64,000 nt of DNA, from assembly GCF_037042905.1 (NCBI RefSeq), contig NC_087247.1, positions 27,838,001-27,902,000 on the forward strand, written 5' to 3'. Each line of letters begins with the position of its first letter. Position 1 is the stretch's first letter. Made by a program: the position numbers and the translations under genes. This document shows, one piece after another, positions 19,201 to 46,200 of this stretch. Source of the DNA: Lytechinus pictus (taxonomy: Eukaryota). Under the pieces are notes generated by a model that had not been told where the DNA came from, made no database searches, and saw only the letters and a program-made list of their open reading frames with translations.

Positions 19201-22200
19201 AACTACCATGGCAACCTTGATTCTGATTGGCTGATGAGCCCTGTTACCATGGTAGTTGCCATAATGGCAAAGTTCCAACAGTTGCAAGTCCTTTATGAAA
19301 CGGACCCCTGGAGTCGTTCAACCCAAAAGCCAGATCTTGCATGAACCCTCTACTACACAGGACTTGTGTAGTGACCCGAGAAGATGGGCACAGAGCAAAT
19401 ATTGCCCTTTAAAACCATGCAGTATACTATGACCAAAGAGAGCCTAGGTGTGCAGGAGTTTGTCTCTCCAAAAGGTGGCTTTTTAAGGGGGTATGTAGAT
19501 ATGGGGTAAGATTGTTAGCATCGAATGTCTTTGCTCATTCACTGGCAAATTGTAATTTTCACCTTAAAACACTAACAATCAGAATATAGGCACCTTTTCA
19601 GCAAAGTTTTAGCCTAACCGACAACCCCATCAGGAACCAATTAAGTCCCTGCTCCCTCCCCCATCAAACAACCCTTGAGCAAATAATCATTTTTCCCCAA
19701 ATGTCAGATTACCATAAATAGGTGTCTTCTACCAGTAAGATAATTAATGACAAACTTCTTCTTAGGTCACTACAGATGTCGTGTCCTGTTAATGGTACAA
19801 GAATTACATGATATTTTCCTGTGAAAAGACTCTCGTGCAGTGGCAAAGGCAGTGGCAGTTCATAGCTCTGGTAGGAGGGAGCAGACACAAAAGTTTTGTA
19901 TCCTATGATCATCCTTACAGTTACAGGTAGTTTCTCCTGCCCTATTGTAGCCCCATAGGCGATTCAAACGAGATCAGGTAGGCCATTCTTCACTTGGACC
20001 TGGATAGTGATGTACTAAGTCCATAGGTGAGATTGTGCATCACAGACTGGAGATTGTTAGACCAGAGGGTGACGCTTTCATGCGTGCAGAGTCATCAAGG
20101 GATTCTGTTGAGCGGAGAAAACTGTGTCTAGATTTGAGTCTCTTGGCAGGTTCATGGTTGACGAGTGGAATACTATGTTCTTGATTTTTTTTTCTTTCAT
20201 CTGTGCTGATGACTTCTCTTCTGACGTACGGTGGGGCAATAATACAGAGTAGGTAAAGATTACCCACTTCTGTTAGTCGCAAACAGCCAGTGATGGCTCT
20301 GCAAGCTCCATTCAAGACTTGGGGTCAATATAGCAGCAAGGGCTGCATACTCAGCAGTGGAGAAGCATAGAGCAAGAGCTGTGGTACAGATAGATTTGGC
20401 ATCTGTCAATTCCCAATCTGTCTCCCAGCTTCTTCAGAATGATATTCCTTGCTCCAAATTTTGCATTTGTTTTGGCAGCATGTTCTTTCTATGAAAAAAG
20501 GTCTAGAATGACGCCAAGGTAGGTTGGCTTTTTACCACCTGACCCTCAGGTTTTGATCTGCTCTCTGTTTTTAAGGTGGAATACACTCTTATTGGGGGGT
20601 CTTTTTGGAGATGATTTATAGGACAGTAAGGAGTTAGACTTGCCAGATCATCACTGAGTTCGTTTTGGCACACTGATGATTGATTATTACTTTAGAGATT
20701 ATTGCACAGTTCAATGTTTTCCCACTCCATTCAAGCAGCGATACAAAATTATGGCTGTAATTTAGATGTTCCAGCCTTATTATATGAACAAATCATCATT
20801 ACAAATACAGATTAGTATGTTTTAGCAATACTGTAGGGGTATCATCCCAATTACATCAGTTTTAGATATATTCTCAGACATATTTCTTATACCATGGATG
20901 TCTTTAAAGATTTACATTACTTGATACTTGATGTAGTGATCCCTTTGGCAGCTCATACAGAAGCTATACTGGGATGATGAATAAAGTGAGCCACTGGAAG
21001 GAGCATCATGAAGTGCAGAAATGGTGATGGATAGACATAGCAATTTTTTATATGTACAGTTAAACATGCTATGCTGAGTGCAAGTAAAAACCAAGCTTTT
21101 GAATTTAAATCATTTGGGATCCAACAGGGGGCTGCATCATTCTGATGGCAGGGAGAGCAGCCTCCTTGAAACTGGGCATTCCTTTGGTGTTGGCAGCTGA
21201 GCTGGGTAGGTTGTTCCAGTTCCTTATCGTTCTTGGATAGAACGAGAACTTGAAGGGGTCGATTGTGGCTTCAGGTATGATGTACTTCAAGTTGTGATCA
21301 TGTCTTGTATAAAATGTTGCTGGGGTGACGATAAGTGGAAGAGTTATGAAGACATGATGGTAGTGGATTTTGTGAAAGAGGGAACATTGGGCAAGGATTC
21401 GGCGTGTGTGTAGTGCATCCAATTCCAATGACGTCACAAGAGATGAAGGTGATGTGGAAATCCTGTAGTCCGAGTACACGAAGCGAGCCGCTGATCTTTG
21501 TACTTGCTCAAGCAGGATTCCAGGCCTCACAGCCATATACTAGTTGGGGGCGCACTAAGGATGTGTAGGCACTCGACTTCACATCTCTTGTACAAGAGGA
21601 AAGAGTCCAAGAGTACGACTTGCTTTCTGCCGGACGAATTGGCAATGCTTGTTCCATCGCAGATCAGAAGAAACTGTAACACCCAAGTAATTGTAGTTGC
21701 TAGCTCTAGGGATTACACTATTTGTCAGATGATACTGCTGGATGTTGGGAGTGCATTTGCGTGATCTAAATCTCCATGGAACGAACAGTAGCGTTAGTGT
21801 AAGCCCGACAATAGTGGCATGTGTACCTGTTTTTCCCGAAGCTTTTCTCGAAGCTTTGTCGATGTCCTTTACATGTGTATGCATGTTGAGAGGAATCCTT
21901 TTCTTTCAGACATCTTTTCTTAAACTGAGTATTTAAGGCATCAGTTTTTAACATCCGGAGTCACTGACACTATCGCTGTAGCAGAAAATACCTGAAGGAC
22001 AACATCAAAGACCACTTAAGCTGATATGCCTCCTCTCCATATTTAGGGACTTTTCTTGTATGCCCCTCCCTTGTTGTCTCAATAGATGTGTGCAAACATC
22101 ATGCCATATTACATAATGACACTTATATAGACATAGAAAACATCTCCCAATTTAGTAAGCCTTTCTATCTTTCATGGTTTTCTTGGCCTTTTCTTGGCCT

Positions 22201-25200
22201 AATCAGGAATGATAGCTCAGTCGATAGAGCGGGGGTTTCGGATTCCGGTGACCTTGATTTGATTCCCACTTGGTACATTAGTGCTCTTTTGTAAGGCGCA
22301 TCCTCATTACCATGTTACCAGGTTTTGGAGAGGACATTAAGCTGTCGGTCCTCTGGGTTGTTTGCTTACAAGCATTCATGCTTTCTTAGTAATCAGGTAA
22401 ACAACCATCATATTAAGTCTTAAGATCCCAGGTTTTCATACTTTCATCCCTCTGATTTCTTGAGTTATCAAATTGAAAGTGACATGAAAAGTTCCCTGTG
22501 ATTTAACTTCTGACACTTTAATAGTATTAAAGTTTCAACAGAAACTTGTCGAACTCACAACTTTGGCATCTTTGGGCTACAGCCTCCACCCAGACACAAC
22601 CTTGGAAGTTGGACATGCATGGGTGATTAGGTATTATTTGACAAAACAGATCCATTTGTTAACCATTCCATATTCACTCGAGGAAAGTGATCTGAATATG
22701 CAGCCAAAAGCCTCTGCCAATGACTTAATGGAGTATAGGACGTCCCTGAAATTGAAAAAAAATATCTGTACAAGCCTTAGGTGAAGACCCACTTTATGAT
22801 CAAATCAGGGACTGTGCCTGAAGAGTAGTGTTGTCCATTCTAATATATCATCAATGCTATACCTACTGTAGCACACTAAAAAAATGTTATGTACCCAGCT
22901 ATGAATCCTCCAAACCATATTATTCTCTTTTTATCTTCAACATTTAAATTTCTCTTTAAAGCTGCTCTTTTATGTATGATAAGTTTAAATGCCATGCTCA
23001 TCGCACTGTTTAGAATTGGTAGACAAGCAATATACAAACAAGGATAAATGATTTTTTTTAGAAATAAGAGAAATGAAGTGGTGTCCTTTAATTTACCATT
23101 GCCAGTATGCATGTAGGTATATTATTGAAAGGGATGGTCCAGGCTGGATAATCTCTATATCTCAACTAATAGAGTAAAATTCACAAAGCAAAATGGTGAA
23201 AATTTGATCAAAATCGGATAAGAAATAACAAGTTATTAAATTTTAAAGATTTGCATTATTCCGGTGAAACAGTTTTATGTATATCTTTATGAATATTCAT
23301 TAGGTGGGCTGATGATGTCATATCCCCACTTCTTCTTTTGTAATTTATTATATGAAATTAGGTTTATTCAAAATTGTTCTACCAAGAACTAAAACAATTG
23401 GATTGACAACTGATTAAGTACATTAGTTATTATTGCCGCAAATTATTTCATCATAATGCAGACACATCATTTACGCATGTATGAAATAATGAAACATTTA
23501 GGATTTCATGTATTAATATAAGAAAAAGGAAAGTGGGGATGTGACATCATCAGCCCACCTAATGAATATTCATGACGATGTGCATATAACTGTTTTAAAA
23601 AATATTGATAAACTCTAAAATTCAATAACTTTGTTATTTGTTATCCGATTTTTAAGAAATTTTCAGCATTTAGCTTTGTGAATTTTACCCTATTTATTTA
23701 AATAGAAATATTTTCAGCCTGGACCATCCCTTTAACAAATAGTACTGCACACTTAAAAGTGGATTATTTTCCTCAAGATTTTTAAGGGGAAAAATACATC
23801 GTTGCTAAGGTAAATAGTGTTGCTAGGCAATGGAACTGTGTCAGTAGATAATGGTACAACTCCGGAATGCTGTTTGCCTATCGATAACAAACTATCATGT
23901 TAATTTTCTCAATATTTTTACTCTAAGGCACAACTTCCTCAGCACATTTGGCCGAGAGGAAGAGTGGTAACATAGCCGTTGCTAGGGAATATTGTTTCTA
24001 GGCAACACCTTTGTCTCCAAGGAAGCTATAAAATAGTCAGTTTGTTGAATGATTATTGAAAACGAGGTTGTAGGCATCTATATGATAATTGTGTCAGTAT
24101 TATTGCTCATAATGGACTATTTTTCCACAGATTTGTCCAGGGAAAAGAGTGTTAACATAGTCGTTGCTATGGAAAATAGTCGTTGCTAGGCAATGAATTG
24201 GTATCCATAGGTAATATGAAATGGTCATTTTGTTGTTGTTCTATTGAAGACAAGATACTACATGTTAATTGATCAGGTATTATTAACTCAATCAACTTTG
24301 TCACCACAAAATATAAAGTATGTGACTTGTACATACATGTTTCAATGCACGCAGTCAAAATGAACATAATATGGCGATTTGTACAATGTGAAGGGGTATG
24401 TCAGTTAGAGCTTAGCAAATTTATTTGAGGTTCGCAATGGTTAAAATGGGGGTTTTCAGTTCTTTTTATTATTTTTCAATGATACTTCATAGAATTTCAT
24501 TGGTGTAATTTATTTGGTTTAATTTAACCTAGTTAAAAAGTTGAAAGTTAGGTTTGAAATGGAAAAATAAGTGGTTTACTTAAGGAGCTAAATGGTTGCT
24601 AAGGAAATTTTTGTTGCTAGGCAACAGTTTCTGAGAAAATGTTCATAAAATTCATGCTAAGTTGTTTTTCAGTAATTCTTCTTACAATATATAGTGGATC
24701 TATCCTTTGAAAATAAGAAAAAATACCTGATAATTCAAATTAATGAGTAAAAAATCAATATTCACAAGAAATATTCAATAAGTATTTAAAATGGGCGTGG
24801 CTTATTCAAGGCTGGTTTCCATGGTGATGCTACACATTACACCATTTTTAATGCCCAATTCCGAAAAATTCAGAAAATTTCCTTTAAATTGATGTATGAT
24901 TTTGCTTTGATCCAGCCGGGGGGATTAAAGTCAAGAAATAAGGCACTTTTTGGCTTCTGGCCGCTCACCTAATAGGGGTTGCCTGGGGCTAGCTTCCTGT
25001 ACAAAGTAGGCCCTACCAATTAAAAAAAAAAAATCCGTGTTTACGAGAGTCGCGCAAGCAAAACGGTGGCGGATTAGGACATGCTTTTAAATTGTTTTGA
25101 GGGGCGAACGAGTGAAAATATATTTTGTATACCTTTCGTTATGAACTCCCGTTCTCCATGACGAAATATAATTGACGAAAGGAAAGTAAAACAGAAAAGA

Positions 25201-28200
25201 AGTCACAAACATCTCAGAATAGTTTGCGATCTATCAGGACATGTTTTAAAATTGATTTTAGGTATCAACAAGTTAAAATATATTTGATATACCTTTCGTT
25301 GTGATCCCTTGTTCTCCGTTAAGAAATATTAAATACGTCTTTTCTCGACGATGTTGGAAACGTAAATAAAACAGAATAGAAGTCACAAACATCTCAGATG
25401 GGTGTGCGATCTATCACAACATGTTTTAAAGCTGTTTTTAGGGGTCAACAAGTTAAAATAGATTTGATATACCTTCCATTATTATCCCCTGTTCTCCGTA
25501 AAGAAATATTAAAGATGCATTTTCTCGACAAAGTTGGAAACGTCGATAAAACAAAATAGAAGTTGGTAGCATCTCATATTTATTGGTGATACATATTTTT
25601 CGAGGGGTCAACAAGTTAAAATATATTTGATATACCTTTCGTTGTGATCCCTTGTTCTCCGTTAAGAAATATTAAATACGTCTTTTCTCGACGATGTTGG
25701 AAACGTAAATAAAACAGAATAGAAGTCACAAACATCTCAGATGGGTGTGCGATCTATCACAACATGTTTTAAAGCTGTTTTTAGGGGTCAACAAGTTAAA
25801 ATAGATTTGATATACCTTCCGTTATTATCCCCTGTTCTCCGTAAAGAAATATTAAAGATGCATTTTCTCGACAAAGTTGGAAACGTCGATAAAACAAAAT
25901 CGAAGTTGGTAGCATCTCATATTTATTGGTGATACATATTTTTCGAGGGGTCAACAAGTTAAAATATATTTGATATACCTTTCGTTTTGATCCCTTGTTG
26001 TCCGTTAAAAATATCAAATACGTCTTTTCTCGACGATGTTGGAAACGTAGATAAAACAAAATAGAAGTCACAAACATCTCAGATGGGTGTGCGATCTATC
26101 AGGACATGTTTTAAAATTGTTTTTAGGTGTCAACAAGTTAAAATAGATTTGATATACCTTTCGTTATGATCCCTTGTTCTCCGTTAAGAAATATTAAATA
26201 CGTCTTTTCTCGACGATGTTGGAAACGTAGATAAAACAAAATAGAAGTCACAAACATCTCAAATTGGTGTGCGATCATTCAGGACATGTTTTAAAATTGT
26301 TTTTAGGTGTCAACAAGTTAAATTATATTTGATATACCTTTCGTTGTGATCCCTTGTTCTCCGTTAAGAGATATTAAATGCGTCTTTTCTCGACGATGTT
26401 GGAAACGTAGATGAAACAAAATAGAAGCCACAAACATCTCAGATGGGTGTGCGATCTATCAGGACATGTTTTAAAATTGTTTTTAGGTGTCAACAAGTTA
26501 AATTATATTTGATATACCTTTCGTTGTGATCCCTTGTTCTCCGTTAAGAGATATTAAATGCGTCTTTTCTCGACGATGTTGGAAACGTAGATAAAACAAA
26601 ATAGAAGTCACAAACATCTCAGATGGGTGTGCGATCTATCAGGACATGTTTTAAAATTGTTTTTAGGGGTCAACAAGTTAAAATAGAGTTGATATACCTT
26701 TCGTTATGATCCCCTGTTATCCGTTAAGAAATATTAAAGATGCATTTTCTCGACAAAGTTGGAAACGTAGATAAAACAAAATAAAAGTCACAAACATCTC
26801 AGATGGGTGTGCGATCTATCAGGACATGTTTTAAAATTGTTTTTAGGTGTCAACAAGTTAAATTATATTTGATATACCTTTCGTTGTGATCCCTTGTTCT
26901 CCGTTAAGAGATATTAAATGCGTCTTTTCTTGACGATGTTGGAAACGTAAATAAAACAGAATAGAAGTAAAAAACATCTCAAATTGGTGTGCGATCATTC
27001 AGGACATGTTTTAAAATTGTTTTTAGGTGTCAACAAGTTAAATTATATTTGATATACCTTTCGTTGTGATCCCTTGTTCTCCGTTAAGAGATATTAAATG
27101 CGTCTTTTCTCGACGATGTTGGAAACGTAGATGAAACAAAATAGAAGCCACAAACATCTCAGATGGGTGTGCGATCTATCAGGACATGTTTTAAAATTGT
27201 TTTTAGGTGTCAACAAGTTAAATTATATTTGATATACCTTTCGTTGTGATCCCTTGTTCTCCGTTAAGAGATATTAAATGCGTCTTTTCTCGACGATGTT
27301 GGAAACGTAGATAAAACAAAATAGAAGTCACAAACATCTCAGATGGGTGTGCGATCTATCAGGACATGTTTTAAAATTGTTTTTAGGGGTCAACAAGTTA
27401 AAATAGAGTTGATATACCTTTCGTTATGATCCCCTGTTATCCGTTAAGAAATATTAAAGATGCATTTTCTCGACAAAGTTGGAAACGTAGATAAAACAAA
27501 ATAAAAGTCACAAACATCTCAGATGGGTGTGCGATCTATCAGGACATGTTTTAAAATTGTTTTTAGGTGTCAACAAGTTAAATTATATTTGATATACCTT
27601 TCGTTGTGATCCCTTGTTCTCCGTTAAGAGATATTAAATGCGTCTTTTCTTGACGATGTTGGAAACGTAAATAAAACAGAATAGAAGTAAAAAACATCTC
27701 AAATTGGTGTGCGATCATTCAGGACATGTTTTAAAATTGTTTTTAGGTGTCAACAAGTTAAATTATATTTGATATACCTTTCGTTGTGATCCCTTGTTCT
27801 CCGTTAAGAGATATTAAATGCGTCTTTTCTCGACGATGTTGGAAACGTAGATGAAACAAAATAGAAGTCACAAACATCTTAGATGGGTGTGCGATCTATC
27901 AGGACATGTTTTAAAATTGTTTTTAGGTGTCAACAAGTTAAATTATATTTGATATACCTTTCGTTGTGATCCCTTGTTCTCCGTTAAGAGATATTAAATG
28001 CGTCTTTTCTCGACGATGTTGGAAACGTAGATAAAACAAAATAGAAGTCACAAACATCTCAGATGGGTGTGCGATCTATCAGGACATGTTTTAAAATTGT
28101 TTTTAGGGGTCAACAAGTTAAAATAGAGTTGATATACCTTTCGTTATGATCCCCTGTTATCCGTTAAGAAATATTAAAGATGCATTTTCTCGACAAAGTT

Positions 28201-31200
28201 GGAAACGTAGATAAAACAAAATAAAAGTCACAAACATCTCAGATGGGTGTGCGATCTATCAGGACATGTTTTAAAATTGTTTTTAGGTGTCAACAAGTTA
28301 AATTATATTTGATATACCTTTCGTTGTGATCCCTTGTTCTCCGTTAAGAGATATTAAATGCGTCTTTTCTTGACGATGTTGGAAACGTAAATAAAACAGA
28401 ATAGAAGTAAAAAACATCTCAGATGGGTGTGCGATCTATCAGGACATGTTTTAAAAATTGTTTTTAGGGGTCAACAAGACACAATAGATTTGATATGCCT
28501 TTCGTTATGATCCCTTAATTGTTCTCCGTTAAGAAATATTAAAGATGCATTTTCTCGACAAGTTGGAAACGTAGATAAGACAAAATAGAAGTCAGTTGGT
28601 AGCCTTTCATATTTGCGATCTATCAGGACATCTTTTAAGATTGTTTGAAGGTGTCAACAGGTTAAAATATATTATATATGCATTTCGTTACGATACCTTG
28701 TTTTCCGTAGAGCATAGGCGGTTCGGGGCGCGAGGGACTCCCCCCCCCCCCCCCCCCCCCCCCCTTGGACGAGCAAAAAAGATAGAAAAAAGGGAAAAGA
28801 GGAGGGAAAAGAGAGGAGTAAAAAGAAGAGGAAGATGAGGGAAAGACTTGGGGGGAAAAAATCTTTCATGTCACTCTATACAATTTTCGCTCGTGCTTCG
28901 CCCTCGCATTGCCTGTTAGGTGATTTTCATATCTTGTTCAATGAGTTTAGATATCAAGTTTGAAAGTTAATTTACAAAACACATTTCACCTCGGAAATTT
29001 AACTTCATTATTTTGTGTGATTTACAAATTGATTTTTAAAAAGTGCTCTGTAAACATGTCAGTTTTATGGTCTGAATATTAATATTTTCTGTTCGTGCTG
29101 CGCACTCGCGAATTTTGATTGGTACCTATTATTCTCGTGCATTCCATAAATTTTCAAAATATCCCTTTTTGGGTCTGTGTGTGCTATCGCGCCTTAGCTA
29201 GCGCTGCACGCTTGCATTTTGATTGGCGAGTTATGTATGTCTCAATATTGATTATACAACAAACTACTTGAAATCCCCTTTTCATTCATGACAGTTTATC
29301 AAAAAAATTGGCTCACGGTTTGCGTTCGCATTAATGGTTAAATATATTAACTTGATGCATCATATTTATAGTTACAAAGGTGCTTGAAATGTCCAGATTT
29401 CAGGCCATAATATCATCAGATTTCGCGCCCTCATTATGCATTCATGAATATTTAAGATATTTCGGGTGATTTCATGCAACTGTCTAGAGTGGGCCATAAT
29501 GTGCCTGCACTGTACATCTATAGGTCCTTGGTTGAAGTCAACGATCCTATATAGCTATAACGACCCCTTGAACCTGAATTGGGTCAATTACGCCGTCTAG
29601 CACGTTTTGAGAACAATGGATGAAGGTGTGAAAATCACAAAGCAGCTAACAAAAGGGAAAATCCGTTTCAATTGACGTTATGCTATAGATTGCGTATAGC
29701 GGTTTGAATGTGAAACCCTGAACATGCTGAATGCCTACTACTGTGTACTAGTAGGTCCATGGTTATAGACTCTATTATAGTTGCGTGCATGTCTTCTCCA
29801 AGCCGATTCATAGCTTGTCGATGGCTTTAATGCACGTAAAATACAAATATACATGTAACTCTAGGTCCCATTATAGGGCATTTTTAACGGAATCGCCGAT
29901 GAGATAATTTTGACAAAACAAAAATGAATCACACTAATTATGCAGCAGCTATGTTTCTAAACATTACATGATCAAAGAAAAGACACGGGATGATATTTAT
30001 TAAATTTGTTAATGGCGGCTGGTCTTTATGATAAAAACATAGGTCTATTTTATCTTTAAGACATGAGAAAACAAATAAATCAATTATATAATTAATGTGT
30101 GTGTTTTACTTTTTACAAACGTGTATCAATCGAACATGCTTGACTTGCACGTAATTAATTTCCTCGTAATTTTTCTCTTATGGCTCGACTGTATTGATCT
30201 TTTATTTTCACTTTGCCGATACCATAATACGAGTAACGACTCGTGAAACGGAAATGTGTAGATTATCTATTATCTAAAAGTCAGATCCGACTTGAAGAGA
30301 AGTGATTATCACATAAAGGGTCGTAATCAGTCATGCATTAAAGTTTTATATCTACCGGTATTAGAAATATGTATTTGTACCCGACTTTGTTACATTTCTC
30401 TTAATGCTGGCTTCCAATCGTAAAATTGTGAGTGGAATTGTTTTGCACAAGTCCGGCTGCCTCCGACTGCACAAGCTTTGACCCCCGTTGACTACCTGTA
30501 GATCCACGGCCAACCGTCGCGACGCGTCGTCTCGACTCTACTGGGTATTGGAGAAGTACCAGGCCAGGGTCGAGTCACTTATACAAGAGCAAGTTCTGCA
30601 TTTGCCGGACTTTTGAAGAGCCTCTATTTTGAGGCTCGGGTTGTGGAGTATGGATTTTTCGTTTATTTGGTTCTCTGGTTATTTTATAATTTTTTTCTTT
30701 TACGGGCATTATAACTATTCCCTTCTACTACCACAGTGCGCCCCCACAAAAAAAACTATACACTTTTGAAATGGCTGCCAAATAAAAAATATATCACTTT
30801 GGGGGGAAAGACTTGCATGTTATGGAAGCCATTAAAATCAACTTTCATATGACACCAAAAAGTTGAAATACTATCACGATTGAGCGAACACTGCCTACTG
30901 AAACAAATGGTATGATAATTATGCTGGGCTGGAATTAGCCTTCCATTTTTTGTCAGTTTTTGAGGGGCAAATCCAGATATTACGGGCAAATCATTTGGCT
31001 TTGGAACTTGCAATGTTAAGGGCGTTGTGATAAATTATTGATCAACCAGTTATGAATGTTTAAGCAAGTTTCATGAATTATTAAATTGAACAAAAATTAC
31101 ACATAAATTACACAAAATTACACATCTTGGGCAACATTTCAACATTATCATGTGGCTCTCAGCAATGTGTTCATTGGAGTCAGGAAAATAGGGGGTGAGA

Positions 31201-34200
31201 TTTGACGTAAGTGGGAGAAGTAGGTTGATGGAAAAATGGTCAACAGAACATTTTAGCCCCCCTCCCTCTCTCTCGCCCACCCCTTCTGTTGAGTGACTGA
31301 TTTTTATTGTCATGTACGCGTGAAGTCCAGAGCAGAATGTTAATTTAATTATAATGATAATTGGGGCATCAACTTTTCCTATCAATCAACAATTTATCAA
31401 TAAATCAACTATTTCAATGGGCAATGTAATCAATCAAACATTCAGTTTTTCAATAAAGTATTTCATAAATTATAATCAAGTCAATTTCTTGGTAATCATT
31501 CAATAAAAAGAAGAAAAAAATTACTATCAGCCACTGGTCACTTCAGTGGCAAATAAGTTTTTAATAGGCTACCATCCAGGAAGTGAGAGGGGTCTGGGAA
31601 ATTGAGGGGGGTGGAGATACATAAGAATTTTATTTGTAAAATGACAAAAAGATGATGAATGCCCTTTCAACCAAGTCTTACCATATCTCGCCCTCTCGCT
31701 TGTAACAGGTACCATCACATTACTCTGACTCACAAAACACACTGCTTAGGTCTACAAGATGAATAGGCTACACTAAATTTACAATTCCTGTTCACTCAAC
31801 CATCATTCTTACAAGATTAAAAAATCATATTTGTTGGGGAAAATCCAGCATAAGTGTTACCTTCCCCTTAAAAATCCCAAACTTAGGATTTTTTTTAAGA
31901 AGTCACCATGCAATCAAATTTTGCCTCATTGTGATGTCAACCATACGATAAATAGACATAAGGAGAAAAATTCGTCCATAATTGACATCGTATACCATTA
32001 TGTTACCTGGTTATTGATCATTCGTTCTCTGTATATGAGGTTCATGGGTCGAATCTCGAACCAACTAAAGAGAGTTGCAGCTCCGTAATTAGCTTGAAGT
32101 AGAAGTTCGCCTTGGTGAGAAACACTCATGAAACTGTTCAGTCTAGGACCTACCTTTAATTTTCAAATGAAATTCAATCTCGACAAGCATGCCCCTTCCC
32201 CCACTGTCATGCCATCACAATCGCCATAATCATAATCATTGTAATCATCAAAACTAGGATTATTATCATAATTAATCTCAGCACCTTCATCACTGTCATT
32301 ATCACCGTCATCATAAAACATTAATAAATTCATCATAAAACATTAATAAATCATCACCGCGGGCGGCGGAGCAGAGGATATATCCTTTGTTCATAGGGTG
32401 CATCATTATTGTCCCCCACAGCAAAATATTATCCTCTGATCATCACTATATTGCTACCATAATCAGCAATCTTGTCGTAATAAATATTCTCGTGATCAAT
32501 TACCATCATTATTACCATCACCATTATAACAACATTATAATTATTATTATCACCATTCTTGTCATTGCCATCATCGTTGGGATTACAATCATAATCATCA
32601 CCATTATCATAATCAGCCATCATTACCTTTCTTTTCGATGTCATCATCACGATCATAATGTCTTTTTTTATTCACACATCATTATGTTTATAGATTAAAA
32701 AACAAAAAAATGTTATTATCGTCATCATCATTACCATCGCTTTCATCCTCATCCTCCTTATCCTTCTTCATTATCACCAACATCATTATTACCATCACCA
32801 TTATATCATCCTCGATCATCATTCCGTTTTCACAAACGCTGACTACTTGTAGTAGTTCCGTCATTGGACAATGTGGTTTGGGAGGATTCATTGGGGTCAA
32901 GAAAGCACAATTAGAGATTATCAGAGATCGTTGCGTAACTTCAGTTGAAACGGATTCTTCCTATTGTTAGTTGTTAATTGTAATTTTCACACCTTCTTTG
33001 TTCGCAACACGTGCGAGACGGTGTTAGTTAATCGAACCCATTCAAGTCGCTCCAGGGCATTCACTTCAAAGCTTCAAAGGGACTTTAAGAGTTATCTTTC
33101 CTAAAACGAAGTAACTCAAGTGCATTGGGGTCTTGAGAATAATTTAAACAAATTCTTGACCACTACGAACTACTCAAAGAACGAATAACAAAGGAGATTA
33201 AGAACTGAACATGACTGGGAAATGGGAATGGATGAGGATTTCAACAAGTTGTATGCATAAATACGAATGCTAGTACCCATGAGCATTGGAGGATGCAGGG
33301 GGGCACAGTCGGTCCATGCCCCCCATTTGAGAAGCAAAATAAACATTTGTAATGTAAAAATGCAAGTCAATCTTCATCATTTCATAATTTCAAATCAATA
33401 CTCGTTTCTTCATCATTTTGAGTTATTTAAAGAAATATACAAGTAATTTGCTCAGCCATTTCATGATATTAAGAGAAGTCATAACAAATATTGAATAATG
33501 TACATTGCTTTATCCAAGTTTCCATCCTCATGATTTTGCGTTCCTAATGCCTCGGTCATATTTGCTCTACGGCGGCCGTACGGTGAGTCGGAAACACCTG
33601 TTTTATCCATTTTTATTCAGACCACGTGTTTGTAGCTATTACAAAAAAAAATGTTAAAACGGTTGTTTTTGACTCGCCGCACGGCCGTCATAGAGCAAAA
33701 ATGACCGAGGTAAGGTCAGGGAATGTTGCAGGAGTTCACCCCCCCCCCCTCCACTTAGATAAAAAAAAATTGCTTGTAATTTTTTTTTTATGAAAAGACC
33801 TAATGGGGGGGGGGGGAGTGAAAACCTCTGTCAAATTTTCATTGAACTCGAACTCTACCTTTCAAAAATTCTGCGTACGCTACTGCAAAAGCTAGAGCTA
33901 TTGGAGCTATACGTGGCGTAAAGAGAAGATTGTTTCATAGCGGCAAAGCTCTGCCTCAAGTACCTTGTATTGTGTATGCTTGCGCGCACATGGTATCTAA
34001 ACTGATATTAAGCGTGCGGGTACACCGCAAGAACGATACTGAGTCGTGACTAAACTTTTCTGAGGACTAATTCGGAGGAATCACGTACCAGTGACAATGC
34101 GGCCGTATTTGTCAGCGTTTTTGGAATTATTATAGGCACGGTTGTAGTCACATCTTCAGGAGCGAACAGAGCTCTGCAAGCTGATTCAGTGGGTCCAGCG

Positions 34201-37200
34201 CCTGTAGACGTTGTGCGCAGTCGCCGCGGTTGATCGAACGCTTTGACGGATCGCATTTTACTTCCGCTGGTAGCCAAAACAAAATTTATTTCCCTTTCCA
34301 TCTTTGTCAGGAATTTACGGGAATTATATACATATTTTTGGAAGCTCACATCATCAGGTACTAATACCTTGGTCACATTTGCTCTAGGGCGGCCGTACGG
34401 CGAGTCGAATGCAGCCATTTTATTCATTTTTATACAAACCACATTATGTAGCTCGTACATAAAATGTTAAAACGGCTGTTATTGACTCGCCGTACGGCCG
34501 CCGTATAGCAAATGTGACGAAGGTGTAAGCATGAATAAGCGATTCGCCGGAGCAAAATTTTTGCGTCCAGGTTCTTGTCCCTTTGAATACTTGTCACGCC
34601 TTCCAACCAATTAATTACGGCACACATCGTCATTCATTATACTAGTAGTTGCACCCTCACAACATTTCACGGCAAACAATTGAGGTAAGGAACTTCTCTA
34701 CACGCGCCAATAAATTCCTCTAGGCTTGCCAGCCCAATGCCCGGGAACAATAGAAGTGCCAGAACGCGACTGCACGGGCTCGTTATGTCACTCCGCGATG
34801 ATCGCAAGGGTGCTCTATTGATATGCAAATTCAACCTCATTAACTTCGTGGCGTGCAAGCCCGTGCATGAAAAGTAATGAGGGCGTGCAAACGCGTTTGC
34901 ACACCCCTCCCGGATATTGACGTCCCGCCTTAAACTTAAATGTAAAATATTCTCATTGCTTCCTGTACTTCTTTGATCCAATGTAGTATGTACTATTTTG
35001 TAATTATCAAAATGAAAAGGATTAGATAAATAACTTACACATGGTGTATATCTATAAAAGTCTGCATACCCATCACAGTCATCATTTGTTGTGCCATCAC
35101 CCTTTTTCGTCATGACACGATTAAGACACAATCTACAGTATCTTGTTTTTTTATGTGAATTCGCATAGCTAAATAAATTGACATTTGATATTGACTCGCT
35201 TCTCAGGTCGTGATACATGCATGTTCTCTTATCACAGTCAATTCAAATCTCACTCTGCACACCATATGTACCATAAATCAGCATTGGATGTACATGTAGG
35301 CAAGTTTAAGTTCATACATTATTCCTTTCACACTGAATTTAGGGAGACCAAAGTTAAGACACATTCTCCTGCCTAAAAATTGTGACAACCTGACTACTTG
35401 CACATCAAAGCTGAATTATCAAAATTGGTAGGGCATCATTAAATTGTTAAAATCGCCCCTGCAAATTTTACTGGCAAGTAATCGTTTGTTTTAGCAATCA
35501 AGCAGTTATCATTGTTTTGCATCCACTAATCTTCACTAAATATGTTACTTAACATGCAAAAAAACTGTCCTAGCAATACTAACCTTGCCTCATCCACTCT
35601 CTTTGTCCATGATTCTCTCCATGAGAGCATGCAGGATAGACGTCACTGTGGTTTTCATGTATGTTCCGCATGTGATTTAGGATAGACTTGAACTTGGCCA
35701 CCATGACCTCTCCATCACCATCTGGGGTTGATGAGGCGCACCAATAAACATGGTTGTTGATGGACCGCTTCCATCTGCCAACAACTTCACAATCTTTCAG
35801 CTTGGACACTGCGATGATCTTTTTCTTCAGACCTAAGATGATAATTCAACCAAGTTTCTTATTCAATATATCTATGCATGTCAATAAGAAATGATCTCTA
35901 CACAAGGGACTGTTACTATCAGAGCAAACATGAAAGAAAACCTTACTTTCAGAGGATACAATTTCTCATTGATGGGCATATGGTGACCAAGCCCCCCCCC
36001 CCCCCCCATCATGTTCTGAAAATAAAGGGGAAAATGGAGGAAGGACCTGGAATTATTCTTAATTCAACATAATGGACCGGACATTGTTCTCAATTCAACA
36101 TAATACATAACAAAACATAAAAACAAAGGATAATTATGAGAAATGAAAGTACTTCCTGCATACCTTTCGCAATATGCCACACATCATATCTATGATTGAT
36201 GTCAGGATAATTCTCTCGGAGCCATTTAGCCACTTGGAGGTGCCTATCTGTCACCAGCATACGTATATTGACCCCCTTCTCCTTCAGACTAGTGAGTCCC
36301 CTTGCCAGACCTTCCAACTCCATCGCATTGCTATTGCGAACTTCATTGCTCTGTAAGAAAATATAAGGATGCAACAACAATTTAAATACCAATTTAGGAA
36401 ATGTGATAGGAAAAAAAAATGGCAAATTGATTCCCTTTGCAATGAAAAATTCTGAGTAGAAGAAATACATTTTGAAAGAGTAATGTGGCTTAAAGTTATA
36501 AAAATAACTTTTTTTTCAAGCTATGCATACATATATCTATATAACAATGCATGCCAGTTTAATTTGATCTGTTCGATTCCCATAGCACTCACCCAAATAT
36601 TGATTATGAATTGTAAAAGAATTGTAAAAGAAAATTTCTTGCCATACCTGGACCAATTGCACATCCAAGATTTTGTTCCTCTTGAGATCCATCAAGGTGT
36701 ACGATCCATACTTTGCACAGTGGCCCGGAGAATCAGACCGCCCATCACCACCAAGGATGAGAGGCTCCCCTTCTGGAATTTCGTTGATCAGCTTCCTCTG
36801 CTCCTTCTTGGCTACTCTGATGACTGCTGGCTGAAGGTACTCTCGCTGGTGTTTCATGAATGTTTCCACTGTAATGGCCTTCACATTCATGTGTCGCAAG
36901 ACACGAAGCACTTTAGTGGGACTACTTCCTCCAAACAGAATAGCACCAGACAAAAGCATGTTGCCCGCGTAGATGTCACCAACCTTTGGCTGACTGAGCC
37001 ATTCCCGGCGAAGACCACAGTCTAGGCAGGTTGTCACAACTTTCAGTGCAGATCCTAAAGATTGTGAAGAAACTTTTTCCACATGCACATTCTTAGAAAG
37101 GCAAGAGATGCATACTTCAAAGAGCTCCATCAGGTTACTCTCAAACACGATAAACTTCTCCTGCATTAAAGGGCTCTTTGGTTCAGATCTGTAAAGAAGA

Positions 37201-40200
37201 CAAACAACAAATAGAAAATAAGAAGAAAGAATTCAGGATTACAAGTATTCCGAGGCATTACTGAAAAGAAAAATGACAAATACAGTTGAATTTGCATGTA
37301 CTGATCACAGGTAGTTGCATATTCACCATATATTATTTAGATCAGGTTTTATATTTATGTATTTTTGTGATGTCAAACAGCTTTGTATTTTACTAAAATT
37401 AATGAACAATGTCAAGAATAGGGTATTGTATATTTATGTCAAATGAATTTAATAGGATAAAACAAAATTTACCTTGACTGCCCTTCTTTGCGTGGTGAGT
37501 TGGTCTCTTCACCTGGAATATATGTGGGGTCCTTGGTCTCATCATCCACTGGTTCATCATCTGCTGGTTCATCATCCGTTGCTTCATCCTCGACATCATC
37601 CACTGCTTCTTTTTCAACATGTTGGTTGGCTGCTTTCAACACAAAAATTCCTTCAGTCTGTGTGACTGCATCACAAAGATCTGCTGCACGCTCTTTCGGA
37701 AAATTCACTTGCTTTCCTATCATGAAGAACATGAAAATGTAAAAGCAACATATTTCCTATTACACTACATGTAGGCTACTTTCCTATTTGGACTGTAAGA
37801 CTCAAGAATAAATTAGAACAGTAACTAAAAAAAAAAAAAAAAATCTAAATGAAAAACTGCAAAACAAAAACAAGAAATAAAACTAAACAAAAATCCTGGA
37901 GACCATAGAAATAATTTGTGGCTCAAACTGTTATCACATCTCTCGGGATCATTCAACAGATTTCTGTCTCAGTCAAATGGAAATTACATGTACCATCACT
38001 TAGGAATACGGAATGTACGTGTATAAACTTGACATTGAAGATTTTTATGTATCCTCCTTTAAAAAAAAGGGGGGGGGGTCATAATCTGGTAAAAAATTCC
38101 TGTATTATACATACAAGTAAATTTGTTCACATTGAATATTAGAGATAAGTCGACGTTATTATTACTGAAAATTTCAGGTTGTCAACACCCAAGCCTCCCA
38201 TGATCATGAACATTGGTGGTGCATGTATTATGCTCGATTAGAACGCATTCAAAATGATCCTCCATTTATCAAAATCACAAAGACTTGCTTTTATCATTTT
38301 CTCCACTTACCCTTTGACACAGTGATGGGCTTTACTTGCACTTTGCAGGTGCGCCTCTGTTTCCGAATGCCAACTCTCCGATGAACCATCTGAAAATTGA
38401 TTAGTTTATTAATGGTTACTCACAAGTATTTTGACTGAAGAGACACATGAATCACTTGGTAGTTGAAATAGAAACTAAAAAGTTGCAACTCCATGAACCT
38501 AAGGATGTAAATTAGTTAATGCTACTGAAATAAATGTGCATTTTGGATAAGTGATGGTTCTTGAGTTACTTTTGCTACACTACCAGGACTACATGTTGTA
38601 TGCATTCAAACTGTTATGAACATTCTGCTTCTGATCAAAACATCCATGATGGCCATTAACATGCAGAAAAAAATTTGTACATTTCCCTCCAATATCCATA
38701 AAACATTTGTGTCATGTACTGAACTTGTTTAATTTGCTTTAAAAAAAATCTGCCTATGGCATGAAATAGAAAAAAAAGTACTATCCTTGATAACACCCAT
38801 GACAATTATATACTGTACAAATACACTCTCCCCCATACACACACAGTGTATGGTTTACTTCAATTTTTAGAAAGTTGGAGGTGAAGAAATTTTTTCAAAA
38901 AACAAATCCAGTTTCATCAAAATAACCTGTGCAACAACAATACACCCAGGGTTGAGGGACATTGTGCCCCTCATATATTATCCAATTTGTCAAGAATAAT
39001 GAATAAATAAAACAAACAAGACAAACAAGCTGAAAATTTCATCAATATTAAGATGTAAAAAAAAAAGATGGTTGAATAATTACATGTACATTTTAAAAGT
39101 TCTGCTTATTTTTCACTTAAATGGTTATATGCATGCACAATTTAGTCACATGTAAGCAAATGAGAGAATCTACATGTACATGTATGATGTCCCTCAATAT
39201 TTCTTTTGTTCTTTGTTTGAATTACAGTACACAACATTTCTTTTTAAAACAGATTTGGCAATGAGGACCAGCTTGACTGAACCATAAAATGTTAAAACAA
39301 TGGCAATTCCATACGTTCAGGGAGAAAGAAAACTTTGTTTCACAGGACAATTGAGAAAATTAAAATATTTTGAATATTTATATAAAAGAAATAGTGAGTG
39401 ATGTCATCAGTTCCTTCACTTGCCTATTTTGTGACATTAGTTCTTTAAAATGTCATACATGAAAACTTTACATTCGATTTTGATGAAATTTTCAGTGTCA
39501 TGCTTGCTGGAATTTTCTCCTTTATTCAAATCAACTTTTTGTTGGAGTGGACTTGTCCTTTCATGTCATAGCATTATCGTTCAATAGTTCAATTTCACCT
39601 ACCTTCACCGAGCACTGGAAACCTTTACTACGCCCAAGAATATCTTTGGTACGTGCCGAGGCTCGTTCCTCATCATCTTTCCGTGTATACTCCTCGGTTA
39701 TCTCGACAACCTCCTACCAAATAAAGTAGAGAAGTAACTATGGTCATCATGATCTCATGAATATAATTTTGGTGGGGAAAACAAAATACGGTCATGACAA
39801 TGTAAAAAGCAGTACAAACAGAACCTATAAATACTGTACATTGAAGAGTATAGAGTTGGAGAACAGGAGAGAGAAAAGTCCTACGTATAAATCTGCTAAG
39901 ATTAAACATATACATTGATGTGTTATCAGAAACTAAAGGAAGTTAAGGAACACTTATTCAGGTCATCAAGTCAACATTGTGAATATACTGGTTATGCTCT
40001 CTCTGATCCCTCTTTTGCTTGGAGATCATGTAGTAAATTTTACATCTTACTCAAAATCAAGAAAATTAATATCATGTGTGCTACATGTAGAATGTGTAAC
40101 GACATCCAAAAGTTGCAGTTGGTGCAAGGGTGGGGGGGGGGGGCATGTTGTGCCTCCTATGATTTTTCTTATTGGAAAAAAAATTAATAAACAAGATGAA

Positions 40201-43200
40201 TTTGGAATGTGTATACAACGTCCCTATTATTCAATTGGGAAATATCGTCACCGGCATGGCATAAAAAAATATTTGACGACCCATCAGACCCAAGCACTGC
40301 TGTTCAGACCTGACCGAAATTGAATAAATTTGCTTTTCCTTTAGACCAAAGCAAGTTGTCAGAAGTAGAACACCAGCATTCAACATTTACCGATACACCA
40401 ATATGACTGAGTGTTGAGCTTCACACTCTATATATAGATATATATGAAGGCCTACATTACACATCCCCCCCCCCCCTCATATTGATGTTTCATTTAATGA
40501 GTCTAGATTTGGCTCTAGACATGTAAAATATCCATATTTGATTGTTGGAACTAACATTAGACACCCGTAATGATGAGAGGCAAGTCTAGATGTAGATCTA
40601 CTCTAGATTCTACTCTGAAAATTATTTTTGCCCAAATGACCTATCGTGACAAAAAAAATAATACACTGATTAGACTCCTATTAAGTCCTAACATGCCTTA
40701 TTAAATTCTAGATGATTTACTCACTTTCTTCCGGCTATATGAAGTTCGTTGTCGTTTCCTACGAACATCCTGAGAGGTCGGCGAAGTTGCAGTTCCAGCC
40801 ACTGGCTCCAGCGGTGCCGACACTGCGCTCACTGGAGTCTGAGAGTACTGAGAGTAGTCTTCACCATCATGTTCATGCTCAAGGCCAACAAATGTAGATG
40901 ATCTATCTGGGTCCTGATCATCCAATGATGATGAGGCAGACGGGACAACATTAGCGGAAGGACATGAAGGGCTAGCCAATGTTGAAGTACTAAAGTTAGA
41001 TCTCACTTTAGGAGATACATGTAGAAGGGTGCCATCACGGTGTCCATGTCCACTGCCACTGGCAGGGTCAGCAGTAGGATTGTAGATATGGGGAATGGCA
41101 TTTGCCAGCAGCTTCGGAGGCAATTTACGTAGTCCCAGTTCAAACATTTTGAGCTGTGTCTGATCATATTGTGATTGATCAAAATGCAGGCTACACACAT
41201 GAATATGTCTCACCCTTGAGTGGTCGAACACACGGTGTCTTTTGATAAAGTTGATCCATGCCATTTGGTAGGAGCTAAACCTACCGGTACCTCCAGGTCG
41301 AGGCATCGGCCCTGGCATCGTATGTACAGTAGTGGTTGCATAAGTCGACGAACAATGCATCACCATGCATCGATACCCTCCGGAATCCTTCTTTTTTGCC
41401 TTCCCCTTTTCTTCTTTCTCCAAACCTGACGGCCCATCACCATCCTTCATTACTAATCTCTACACAGACAAGCACTATAAAGCAGAAAATCAGACTATCA
41501 AAACAAAATTACCAAATTTCCGAGAGTATAAAATCCAAGCAGCAACGGAGTAACCGGGTCACTAGAGCATAACTTTAGCGGAGCGTGCAACTTACCAGCC
41601 CCACAGGCCAGGCGCCTCCAACCTTGTCGATTCCGCTCGCTTGTGTGCAATAGCCGCATCACTCGCGGATAGATATATCACAACAAATGTCGTCGGCTTG
41701 CATTTGACAGTCGAGAAATCGTGATTTAAACTTCCCTTTTAACTAATATCCTCACATTAAGTATTTCTTCGATGGGATGATTTAGGCTAAAAAACATAGT
41801 TGATTATGTGTATAGTCACAATTAAGTTTGAAATATCGACGATAGTTTAACACACTTCGTTCTATTTGCTCCAAGTTTCGCAAGTATGTTTGTTCATTAC
41901 AGTACAGTATACCCACACACCTTGCACCACTGTGGTTTCTCTTCCCCCCCAAAAAAAGTCTATTACATGATATAAAAATAATATTTTGGGTATTATAATG
42001 TTTTGTGTTGTTTATCTATTCAAAATGAATCGAAAGAAAACAACAAATTGACTCGTAATAACATCATAAGCTCTCAAACAACAATGTATCGGGAGTATAT
42101 CGACGAAGACTTTCCACACAACACAGGGCCCCACCACTTTGTCAAAACAAATAGTGCCATGACGTGACGTCACACAAAACGAACCGAATTCACGCCGTGA
42201 GAATTGGCGTCGATGACTTCCATATTTAGGTAGTTTTAATCGCTTATTTTTAATATTTTCAATTCGTTTTATTGTCTTAAATTAACTTATTGATATTAAG
42301 TAGGTTGAAAGCTTTCTAATGATGTAAAGATCTCTACTTTTGTGATCGTCTTCTTATATCAACTTTAATATTAATGTCAATCTAATTACAAAAAACGTTC
42401 TACATCATATGCACGTATATATTTGTATGTATCATAATATATATATATAAAAGAGGCAAAGAGGTAATGCATTATACTAGTTCCAACAGAGTTTACTTTC
42501 AAGTCCAAATTTTCGACGTAAATCCCACGTCTTCTTCAGGGTTACAATATTTTGTCACTGTGAGCTTTATTGTAACCCTGAAGAAGACGTGGGATTTACG
42601 TCGAAAATTTGGACTTGAAAATAAACTCTGTTGGAACTAGTATAATGCATTACCTTTTTGCCTCTTTTATCTCATCTATGTCCAACACGTGAAATGTAAT
42701 ATCGTTATATATATATTATTATATTTGCATATATTATAATTATCCATAAATTATCCAATTATCCATAATTTTTTTGAATGATTAAATGAATAGCCATTTA
42801 ATCAACATTACTTTTCCATACCAATGACAGTTTGGCCTATTATCAGTTTATTTCATCAAACAAACTTGTCTTAGGCTAAGAAGGTATTTTCTATTGGCAA
42901 ACAAGACTAACTAAAAATAAAGCGAAATTATATCATGTTTAGCAAAAATGGCTGTGAATGGGTAATAGGTGAATATCCTGTAGACATTAGAAAATGTGAT
43001 AATTTACCAAAATAGGTTGGGAATTACCGCCAAATATTTTTCAGTATTTTCGCATTAAGCACTGGAATAGATCAATCTGGTAGCATGATCTTCATGAAAT
43101 CCTCTCTAAAATGTTTTCTCAGATAGAATTCATTTGTAAATTCCTTTGAATGCCTCCAAGTTTCTTCACTCACAAACTTGCAATAACATTTTAAAAGATG

Positions 43201-46200
43201 CCACTAAGATTGATAAAGAAAAACTTCGCAAATCACTTAGAAAAAATGTGTTTTCTATAGCTGAAAATAAGTCTTAAAAGTCTGAATTCTGACTTCAGTC
43301 TGAAAAGTGGCATCCCTGCAATTCAGTTCTCAAATATAAAAAATATATAAAAATTGGAATTTACCTTGCATTTATTACTATCGTGGACAGCTAACCTACC
43401 GAGAGCTGAAGCGATCTCTCGGTCACACAACCCTCGGAACCTCTTGTCGGGGCTCTTCAAAGCATCTCGAAGGATGCCTACCAGGTACTCTAAGGTATCT
43501 GTAAATAATTTCAATCAATTTTCACAAATGAGAATAAGGAATACAATTTTTAAGAATCTTTAGAAACTATCAACAGCTACACCCTGTAAGCAAGGGTGGC
43601 ACCAGGGTATTTTGATATGGGGGGGGGGAGGACAACTTGGGCTTTCTCATTTGATATACACATGTAATATGAGTTACACGACATATAATTCTTGACTTTT
43701 TGAGCTCATCTCTCTTCCTTTTTTCTTTTCTTTCTTTTACTTAAACAAGTGGAACGTCTTTGGCAGTCTCGCCTGCATTACGTGATTTAATATAGCAACA
43801 AACGAAAAAATTCATATAATAAAATACTATGTCCATTGACCCAAATTGGCTTTTGACCATAATCATGTGACCAAAGACGTGTGCAAAACAATCATTCATA
43901 CTTGATTACACTTATGTCTATGTTTCATGAATTAGATCTATAAACTTTTAAAGTTATGATGACAATTCCACAAATTCCCCCAACATTACCAAAGTTTGTT
44001 GACCTCACAAGTTTCATTAACTAGGTCCATATACTTTCGAAGTTATGACAACATTTCAAAAGCTTAACCTTGGTTAAGATTTCGATATTGATTCCTCAAA
44101 CATGGTCTAAGTTCATTGACCCTAAATGACATATGACCTTGGTCATGTGACCTGAAACTCAGGCAAGATGTTCAGTAATGCTTGATTACTCTTATGTCCA
44201 AGTTTCATGAACTAGGCCGTTATGATGAGATTTCAAAAACTTAACCTTGGTTAAGATTCCAATGTTGACTCCGCCGCCATCGCAGTCGGAAAAGCAGCAC
44301 CTTTATTACTACTATTTTATACAATCAAGAAAATTTGACTAACCAGGATCATCATTAAAATCATATTTTAAAAGTCTTTCCATAGATCAAGAATAAAAAT
44401 TGATAAAAATAAAAAAAATTATTGGGTAATGAGCAAATTGCATAAAAAACAGAACTAAAAAAAAAAAAAAAAAAAAGACTGATTGATAATATTGTGTTTA
44501 AAAACCCCATCTACTAGTATATACTTTACCAGCTTCCTTTTCTACGAGAGTCTCTTCCTGTCCTTCCTCAATGATATAGGCAAGGGTTATCATACAGATG
44601 GTTTTAAAAAAAGGGTCACCCTCCAGGTACGGTTGCATCTTTTTGGCCACACCCTCTTCCCGAAACAGGTGCCTGTTGCCGGGCGTGGTCGACATATTGC
44701 ATAGGATGCTCAGGGAGACGCGGATTAGAGATTGAATGTCCTTTAATGAAAAAAGTACAAAAAGAAACTTGTGATAAGTGCAGTAGAACCTGTTAGCAGC
44801 CATCTCTCTACAGCAACCAACTCACTATTGTGACCACTAAAATAGATTCCCATCAAGACAGTTTATGTCTAAGAACCTGTATATAGCAGCCACCTGTCTT
44901 TGAATTTGAAGGCAACATTTTTTGTTTCCTGTGGATGGTCTCACTACAGCAAAGTTTAAATGTACTCCACATGGGGATCAAAATCTAGTGAAAACACAAG
45001 TGATGATAAGATAAATAATAATATGGACATTTTTAACGCCCCGGCATCCATCATAAAAAGATGTTTCATGGCACAGAAAAGAATAGGAAAACAATGAAAA
45101 TCTAATCAAAAAGGGGGAAGAATTACAATTACCTATAGTGTAATATATTACCATGAGAGCCTTGGCAGATTTTTTTTTAATTTGATTGAGTGAGAGCAAT
45201 TCAAGAAAACCTACAGACTGTTTTACATGAAACTGTAACTAGTAAATTCATGAGAAAAAGGAAAAAAAAAGACTGAACTTTACGAAATAGAATACTGGAT
45301 TATGGAGGTAAAATGAACGTTTAATACACTTCAGATACATATTACCACAAGGTGTTCAATAAAGCTGTTAAGTTATCCATGTCCACTCAAACTGTGTATA
45401 GTGGCCACCGAAGGGAAATGACAAAATTGGTCAATGCTATAGACAGGTGGCCATTATAGACAGGTTAGGGGCCATCTTAGATTTACCATATATTGTAAAT
45501 ACTGTGCAATGTACTGGACAGAGAGTATTTTTTTTAATGAGTTAGTTTTTTTTTGTATGATATTGCATACATGTATCTGTTTCAATCCACCAAACACCTA
45601 TGATTATTGAATATAATCATTATTCTAAGAGTAAGATTCGTGTTTAGATTCAGCTGCAAGTGCAAGGACTATTCAACTACCGTCAAGAGTCCAAAGTTTC
45701 AGTGAAGCTGATTAATAGTGGCCACTATAGAAGGTGAGATATTGACCAAGGGATGCAATGTTACTATGGTAGTCACTGACTACCATAGTAACATTGCTCA
45801 ACATCCAACAAAATAAAGTTTTTTTTTAAGTTTCTATCTTAGTCACCACTGTGGGTGCCATTTGTAAAAAGTATTATTTAAGCAAAATATGTACTATATA
45901 ATTGTTATTTAAGCATGATATGTCATTATTCATAAATAATACAAAATGAAATTTAATTATTTGTAAATAATTATTTGAAATTATAATTGTTAATAATGAA
46001 TAAGAACTAATTTGTTTACTATTATTTATAAATAATTAATATTCAAAACTAATTATAAATAAATTGAAGGGACAAACTATATAATTTACAAATAAAGAAA
46101 ATATTTTCAATTTTTTTTAACTAACAATATTTGGAAAATCTTCATTTACTATTAAAAAAGGAAATGACATTTAGTATTATTTATAATTGGCATAAAATGT

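Follow-up and report, generated by a model that had tools for sequence, protein, structure and literature searches.

An apparently young Kolobok transposon in sense orientation within an ARM-TIR gene of Lytechinus pictus, and the candidate host–transposase fusions at its splice acceptors

Does a transposase gene that lies in an intron of another gene, on the same strand and in a compatible phase, exchange exons with its host? The question is raised by a 64,000-nucleotide stretch of Lytechinus pictus DNA (contig NC_087247.1, positions 27,838,001 to 27,902,000; hereafter the window), in which intron 4 of an ARM-TIR-type gene on the minus strand is filled almost completely by a transposon in sense orientation. 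An earlier interpretation of the letters (the sequence-only reading) had noted that the intron is in phase 0 and that the transposase is on the same strand, both of which are correct (exon 4 closes on a whole codon, ..AAG before gtaaat), and had proposed that the insertion could switch the host gene among full-length, TIR-less, and de-repressed forms. In our assessment, the element is probably a young sense intronic Kolobok that produces a transcript of its own and across which splicing of the host gene probably continues.

Kolobok transposons are characterized by a TTAA duplication, inverted repeats with RR/AG ends, and a transposase that combines THAP, DDE, and H2CH motifs (PMC6004289). In the window, TTAA duplications are located at 42368–42365 and 4960–4963, within an inverted match between 4956–4978 and 42372–42350 in which each TTAA leads into AGTTGAYATAAGAAG. 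This 15 bp terminal inverted repeat is AG-ended, its two copies (AGTTGACATAAGAAG and AGTTGATATAAGAAG) share 14 of 15 bases, and a second symmetric 17-mer is found 197 bp inward of each element end. Contig C28 carries a second copy with different flanks. Over about 16.5 kb, the two are 98.4–99.0% identical; a 7.7-kb insertion at 40384/5 is particular to the C28 copy. Because the match to this copy starts and ends exactly at the TTAAs, the extent of the element can be set as in Table 1; about 1.2 kb of host intron 4 is original intron sequence, the remainder being transposon. The occurrence of near-identical copies at different sites indicates that the element is young and recently transposed.

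The transposase gene of the element comprises 10 exons encoding THAP, DDE, and H2CH motifs. The open reading frame (ORF) at 41450–40701 holds the THAP domain (Pfam E=1.8e-7), and the 876-amino-acid product of the gene on contig C28 (XP_054773944.2) maps to 10 exons of the window, the last three of which (about 14600–13293) are located past a nested insertion. Asp534, Asp601, and Glu745, as well as His682, His687, Cys697, and His699 of the H2CH motif, are invariant across 17 homologues from echinoderms, molluscs, amphioxus, hemichordates, ticks, and others, and the first three of these residues are probably catalytic. The THAP residues Cys86 and His89 are also invariant in the 17 homologues, and Cys28 and Cys33 are nearly so. 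Because the TTAA duplication, the AG termini, and the THAP/DDE/H2CH motifs match the published definition, the element is classified from its sequence as a Kolobok DNA transposon, an assignment to which all four features examined (TTAA, termini, transposase motifs, and recent mobility) conform. It is apparently autonomous. A further gene is located near the 3′ end of the core, and the segment 4964–9704, the 3′ part of the core, is common to the C28 copy and carries a region that is a passenger of the element and not of this locus.

Transcription was assessed by comparing the region 37650–43600 with two Logan contig sets (X1 and X2), taken as RNA-like from their exon-like depth pattern, and with two stranded raw RNA runs (X15 and X16); these four runs are not to be confused with the isoforms X1 to X3 described below. 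The joint from the THAP exon donor at 40725 to the acceptor at 39713 is present in contigs of both sets and in one X15 read, and the two subsequent joints (39603 to 38389 and 38311 to 37716) are contained together in one 938-nt contig of set X2. These joints represent native transposase mRNA including the THAP exon. Over the THAP exon and its leader, contigs cover 40728–41129, 41100–41400, and 41375–41622, the last being an X1 contig that is colinear with the genome; the 5′ untranslated region (UTR) of coding exon 1 is unspliced and reaches upstream to at least 41622, and probably to about 42282. A native intron in this 5′ UTR, with a donor (CTG/GTAAGT) near 41597 and an acceptor at 41474, was considered and rejected in view of this colinear contig. 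An origin of the transposase RNA from the C28 copy was similarly rejected, as the X1 contigs follow the window allele at the positions where C28 differs (40846–8, 41213/6, and 41558–41619). A further transposase allele, with 41370C and an insertion of CAGTGC after 41071, is also expressed. Depth is zero over 42824–43221, between host exon 4 and the element, which argues for a promoter of the element's own and not for read-through from the host.

The two AG acceptors that the sequence-only reading had placed before the transposase ATG are indeed present: an exon beginning at 41474, after the AG at 41476–41475, would read CLSV-stop, and one beginning at 41459, after the AG at 41461–41460, would read RLV and continue in frame through Met41450 into the transposase. 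Because the contig is colinear over 41375–41622, both AGs are placed within the unspliced 5′ UTR of the transposon mRNA. No joint from 43365 to 41474, 41459, or 39713 was reported in the four runs, which are shallow enough to leave room for low-level chimeras. Of the 14 AGs that occur within 250 nt upstream of the ATG, only one, that before 41459, reads into the ORF; it is the AG of an in-frame TAG that would otherwise close the frame. Given odds of 1 in 3 for a phase match and a single in-frame AG among 14, the sequence compatibility is no greater than expected by chance, a caution that had accompanied the original proposal. The stop-generating AG had been credited with the better pyrimidine tract; a crude count gives 14 of 22 pyrimidines before both 41474 and 41459, and the corresponding values are 16/22 for 39713 and 9/22 for the canonical acceptor at 4758. 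The phase-0 donor of the THAP exon is compatible with host exon 5, as had been stated (Table 1). No joint that would yield a THAP-ARM-TIR product was encountered: the only joint seen from 40725 leads to 39713, and none to any other site was reported in the four low-depth runs.

Where host exons 4 and 5 meet, the peptide SNKCK/ILEAGG is uninterrupted in S. purpuratus as well as in the older L. pictus protein. The S. purpuratus protein LOC100890026, the older LOC129257501 models (583 and 582 amino acids), and the L. variegatus models (members of the same 90% cluster as the older L. pictus models) are all ARM-TIR proteins, plain ARM-TIR in the case of S. purpuratus and L. variegatus. The window allele is intact in each host exon that falls inside the window. 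Of its 582 residues, 12 are not shared with the other allele, and because these differences, polarised by L. variegatus, split 5:7 between the alleles, the host allele is judged from its coding sequence to show no decay. No insertion-free haplotig was found in assembly G000, where the flanks are single-copy save for short repeats. The stretch 43365–43499 is internal to RNA-like contigs of 2276 and 1435 nt, whose downstream 1401 and 854 nt match nowhere in 37650–43364; these contigs probably continue to exon 5. Coverage of exon 4 is low (2–5 raw reads and a contig depth of 14–25), contigs drop rare variants, and no joint from 43365 is listed in the four runs over 37650–43600.

Public annotation presents the locus differently. 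A profile-free search with a 209-amino-acid transposase ORF retrieved XP_063952822.1, which is isoform X3 (616 amino acids) of LOC129282890; its cluster mate is isoform X2 (XP_063952821.1, 712 amino acids). In both isoforms, which differ at their 5′ ends, host exons 1–4 are followed by transposase exon 39713–39603 and onward to a stop at 35581–35579, and window sequence spliced at GT/AG sites reproduces both precisely. The acceptor at 39713, whose native partner is 40725, is thus joined in these models to the host donor at 43365; of the fusion junctions that the sequence-only reading had suggested, this is the one used in gene models, although it has no counterpart in the four RNA runs. Isoform X1 (713 amino acids), which is encoded by two mRNAs, one of them possibly with host exons as 5′ UTR via the 41474 acceptor, is the native THAP transposase and ends at the same stop, which the NCBI transposase models reach by running into intron 7, and LOC135153563 (193 amino acids) is the transposase C-terminus. 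LOC129257501, formerly 583 amino acids, now has 329 and covers host exon 5 onward. Over 1–51943 of the window, the current annotation therefore divides an intact ARM-TIR gene and a transposase gene into four loci, which is explained by two very long introns, and a host form and a fusion form coexist among the NCBI gene models. Isoform X2, queried as an exact sequence against public assemblies, is not on record, and a search for the junction peptide (197–330) returned no protein fragment, a result that is uninformative as fragments from these runs seem to be missing from the collection searched.

These observations can be brought together as follows. The Kolobok would have inserted recently, in sense orientation, at a TTAA in phase-0 intron 4 and would act as a nested transcription unit, whose mRNA would cover most of its own 5′ region, remain unspliced through both AGs, and splice from the THAP exon to 39713, 38389, and 37716, while the host gene would keep joining exon 4 to exon 5 over the 38.6-kb intron. 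The anatomy of the element, its copies, its native splices, and the intact host exons are observed directly. Chimeras through 39713, as in isoforms X2 and X3, would be no more than minor by-products of splicing or else chimeras of the annotation, and are presumably without function. The predicted product consists of 241 amino acids of the ARM N-terminus followed by a transposase without THAP and without Glu745, the putative third catalytic residue; because these two are dropped, it is unlike a selected host–transposase fusion. Occasional capture at 39713 is plausible because the acceptors of the transposon look stronger than 4758 and are transcribed first, 35 kb ahead of the host exon 5 acceptor. 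Splicing into 41474 would produce an early stop and probably nonsense-mediated decay.

Several points weigh against this interpretation. Isoforms X2 and X3 both use the joint from 43365 to 39713, in two models with distinct 5′ ends, and additional NCBI isoforms usually rest on transcript alignments, so that some chimeric RNA may exist. NCBI now models no full-length host protein at the locus. The pyrimidine tracts of the transposon acceptors (16/22 and 14/22) exceed that of the canonical one (9/22), in addition to being transcribed 35 kb earlier. The RNA depth is shallow, the letters of the loose ends at 43365 were not seen, so that the joint to 4758 was not read directly, and the animals sampled for RNA may not carry the insertion.

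A real and reproducible fraction of host transcripts might instead splice from 43365 to 39713, yielding a TIR-less ARM-transposase chimera and less full-length ARM-TIR in carriers. XP_063952821.1 and XP_063952822.1 are reproduced in full from the window with GT/AG sites, the use of 39713 as an acceptor is proven and its pyrimidine tract is the best, both sides are phase 0, and the route fits the capture of transposases via transposon-borne acceptors (bioRxiv 10.1101/2020.05.07.082677). However, no such joint was reported in the two contig sets or the two raw runs, the long contigs that contain host exon 4 in their interior are unbranched, the junction peptide search was blank (in a collection that seems to be without fragments from these runs), and the product is devoid of THAP and Glu745, whereas known fusions mostly retain the DNA-binding domain; we consider this nascent fusion doubtful. 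The related view that the insertion has reached the second of the steps by which a host–transposase fusion is born, here in an immune-type gene of an echinoderm, with 39713 capturing part of the ARM-TIR pre-mRNA of carriers, is rather unlikely. If true, the TIR-less chimera and the lowered dose of the full-length form would mark a young and possibly polymorphic allele that is open to selection. Should the chimeras be real, they would be a very young instance, from a non-vertebrate, of the capture of a transposase, in which a TIR-domain gene is paired with a member of the little-studied Kolobok superfamily.

The opposite extreme, in which there is no chimeric RNA at all and a gene predictor linked separate lines of host and transposase evidence on one strand into isoforms X2 and X3, accords with the lack of a reported chimeric joint in the four runs and with an annotation that also splits the host (329 amino acids) and the transposase (713 and 193 amino acids), but the existence of two distinct fusion isoforms counts against it, and we regard a pure artefact as improbable. 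By far the least credible is the full model of the sequence-only reading, in which 41474, 41459, and a joint from 40725 to 4758 are all used and the gene switches among ARM-only, ARM plus whole transposase, and de-repressed THAP-ARM-TIR forms. Only sequence compatibility speaks for it, and the colinear contig over 41375–41622, the pairing of 40725 with 39713 in the only joint seen from that donor, the derivation of the 41459 AG from an in-frame TAG, the premature stop and expected decay of a transcript spliced at 41474, and a host that is not SARM1-like all argue against it, and nothing indicating a regulated switch was found. The reading that we prefer is that of an ordinary young intronic transposon with a plausible but unproven fusion. 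For the present, it is for annotation that the locus is of practical value: the transposon and its nested insertion broke an intact 582-amino-acid ARM-TIR gene and an 876-amino-acid-type transposase into four annotated loci, and public annotation reports two fusion isoforms that carry no label as host–transposon chimeras.

Table 1. Positions of host and transposon features in the window
Feature	Coordinates	Strand	Remarks
Host exon 4	43365..43498	-	Residues 197–241; donor GT 43364–43363
Host intron 4	4759..43364	-	38,606 bp
Host exon 5	4482..4758	-	ILEAGGLPLLVKML...; canonical partner of 43365 donor; acceptor ..aacag before ATT, phase 0
Kolobok element	4964..42364	-	37.4 kb in window copy; core about 16.5 kb
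Two candidate AG acceptors	41459..41476	-	Present in sequence; region colinear in RNA-like contig
Transposase coding exon 1	40725..41450	-	242 codons, THAP; phase-0 donor AAA/gtgagt after 40725
Transposase coding exon 2	39603..39713	-	37 codons, phase 0 at both ends
Transposase coding exon 3	38311..38389	-	Joints 39603 to 38389 and 38311 to 37716
Transposase coding exons 4–7	37716–37473, 37188–36648, 36350–36164, 35832–35584	-	Hold Asp534, Asp601, and H2CH motif
Transposase coding exons 8–10	about 14600–14429, 14104–13956, 13468–13293	-	Hold invariant Glu745
Nested insertion	14631..34929	.	20,299 bp in transposase intron 7; TAA duplication, GGCGRGRCGTCAA inverted ends

The block in transposase intron 7 is interpreted as a nested insertion in the window copy because it is missing from the C28 copy and is bounded by a TAA duplication and GGCGRGRCGTCAA inverted ends (PIF/Harbinger-like); it contains a tandem array with a periodicity of about 180 bp at about 25076–28708. 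A very high-copy repeat at 39441–39639, just 3′ of transposase exon 2, has many loose ends at 39521 and 39561, and in the RNA contig sets its depth reaches tens of thousands. The beginning of the THAP exon, together with the leader (window 41470–41109), has given rise elsewhere, at G000:C4:23079975-23081395 (1146–2574 of its stretch L005), to a tandem array of four 355-bp units that are 93% identical to one another and 84–87% identical to the window, and X15 reads with a 271-bp back-joint from 41379 to 41109 suggest transcription of another such array. In the remnants of host intron 4, a perfect-looking hairpin at 42440–42680, a palindrome resembling a miniature inverted-repeat transposable element, is located just outside the 5′ end of the Kolobok, and the 120 bp adjoining its 3′ end (4844–4963) are a dispersed repeat with dozens of copies at about 75–80% identity.

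The comparison with SARM1, from which the sequence-only reading had derived de-repression of the TIR domain, is limited to the combination of ARM repeats with a TIR domain in a single polypeptide. SARM1 has the order ARM-SAM-SAM-TIR, whereas Pfam matches in the host protein are Arm (242–274), TIR_2 (343–460), and a weak SAM_3 (512–549) that is below the Pfam cut-off. The 60 best PDB sequence matches of the host are generic ARM proteins (Vac8, importin-alpha, and beta-catenin), and no SARM1 chain is among them. Because neither the architecture nor the PDB matches are SARM1-like, autoinhibition by the ARM repeats can be proposed by analogy only. A further parallel is provided by CSB-PGBD3, SETMAR, and KRABINER, with which the L. 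pictus locus shares a sense transposon in a host intron, an upstream host donor, a transposon-borne acceptor, and, in its gene models, the coexistence of host and fusion forms; the constellation from which such fusions arise (a transposon in a host intron, on the same strand and in a compatible phase) is found here. The known examples have become fixed, are conserved and expressed, and for the most part retain the DNA-binding domain of the transposase (bioRxiv 10.1101/2020.05.07.082677), whereas the L. pictus element is young, its predicted fusion is without THAP and Glu745, and no fusion RNA was seen in the four low-depth runs. The Xenopus XKol and T2-MITE Koloboks are comparable with the element itself in TTAA, AG-ended repeats, a THAP (C2CH)/DDE/H2CH transposase, and the order of length, full-length Xenopus copies being 7–14 kb (PMC6004289). 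The L. pictus core is larger, at about 16.5 kb, and the element differs from its Xenopus relatives in its extra 3′ gene, its 10-exon transposase gene, and its 20.3-kb nested insertion.

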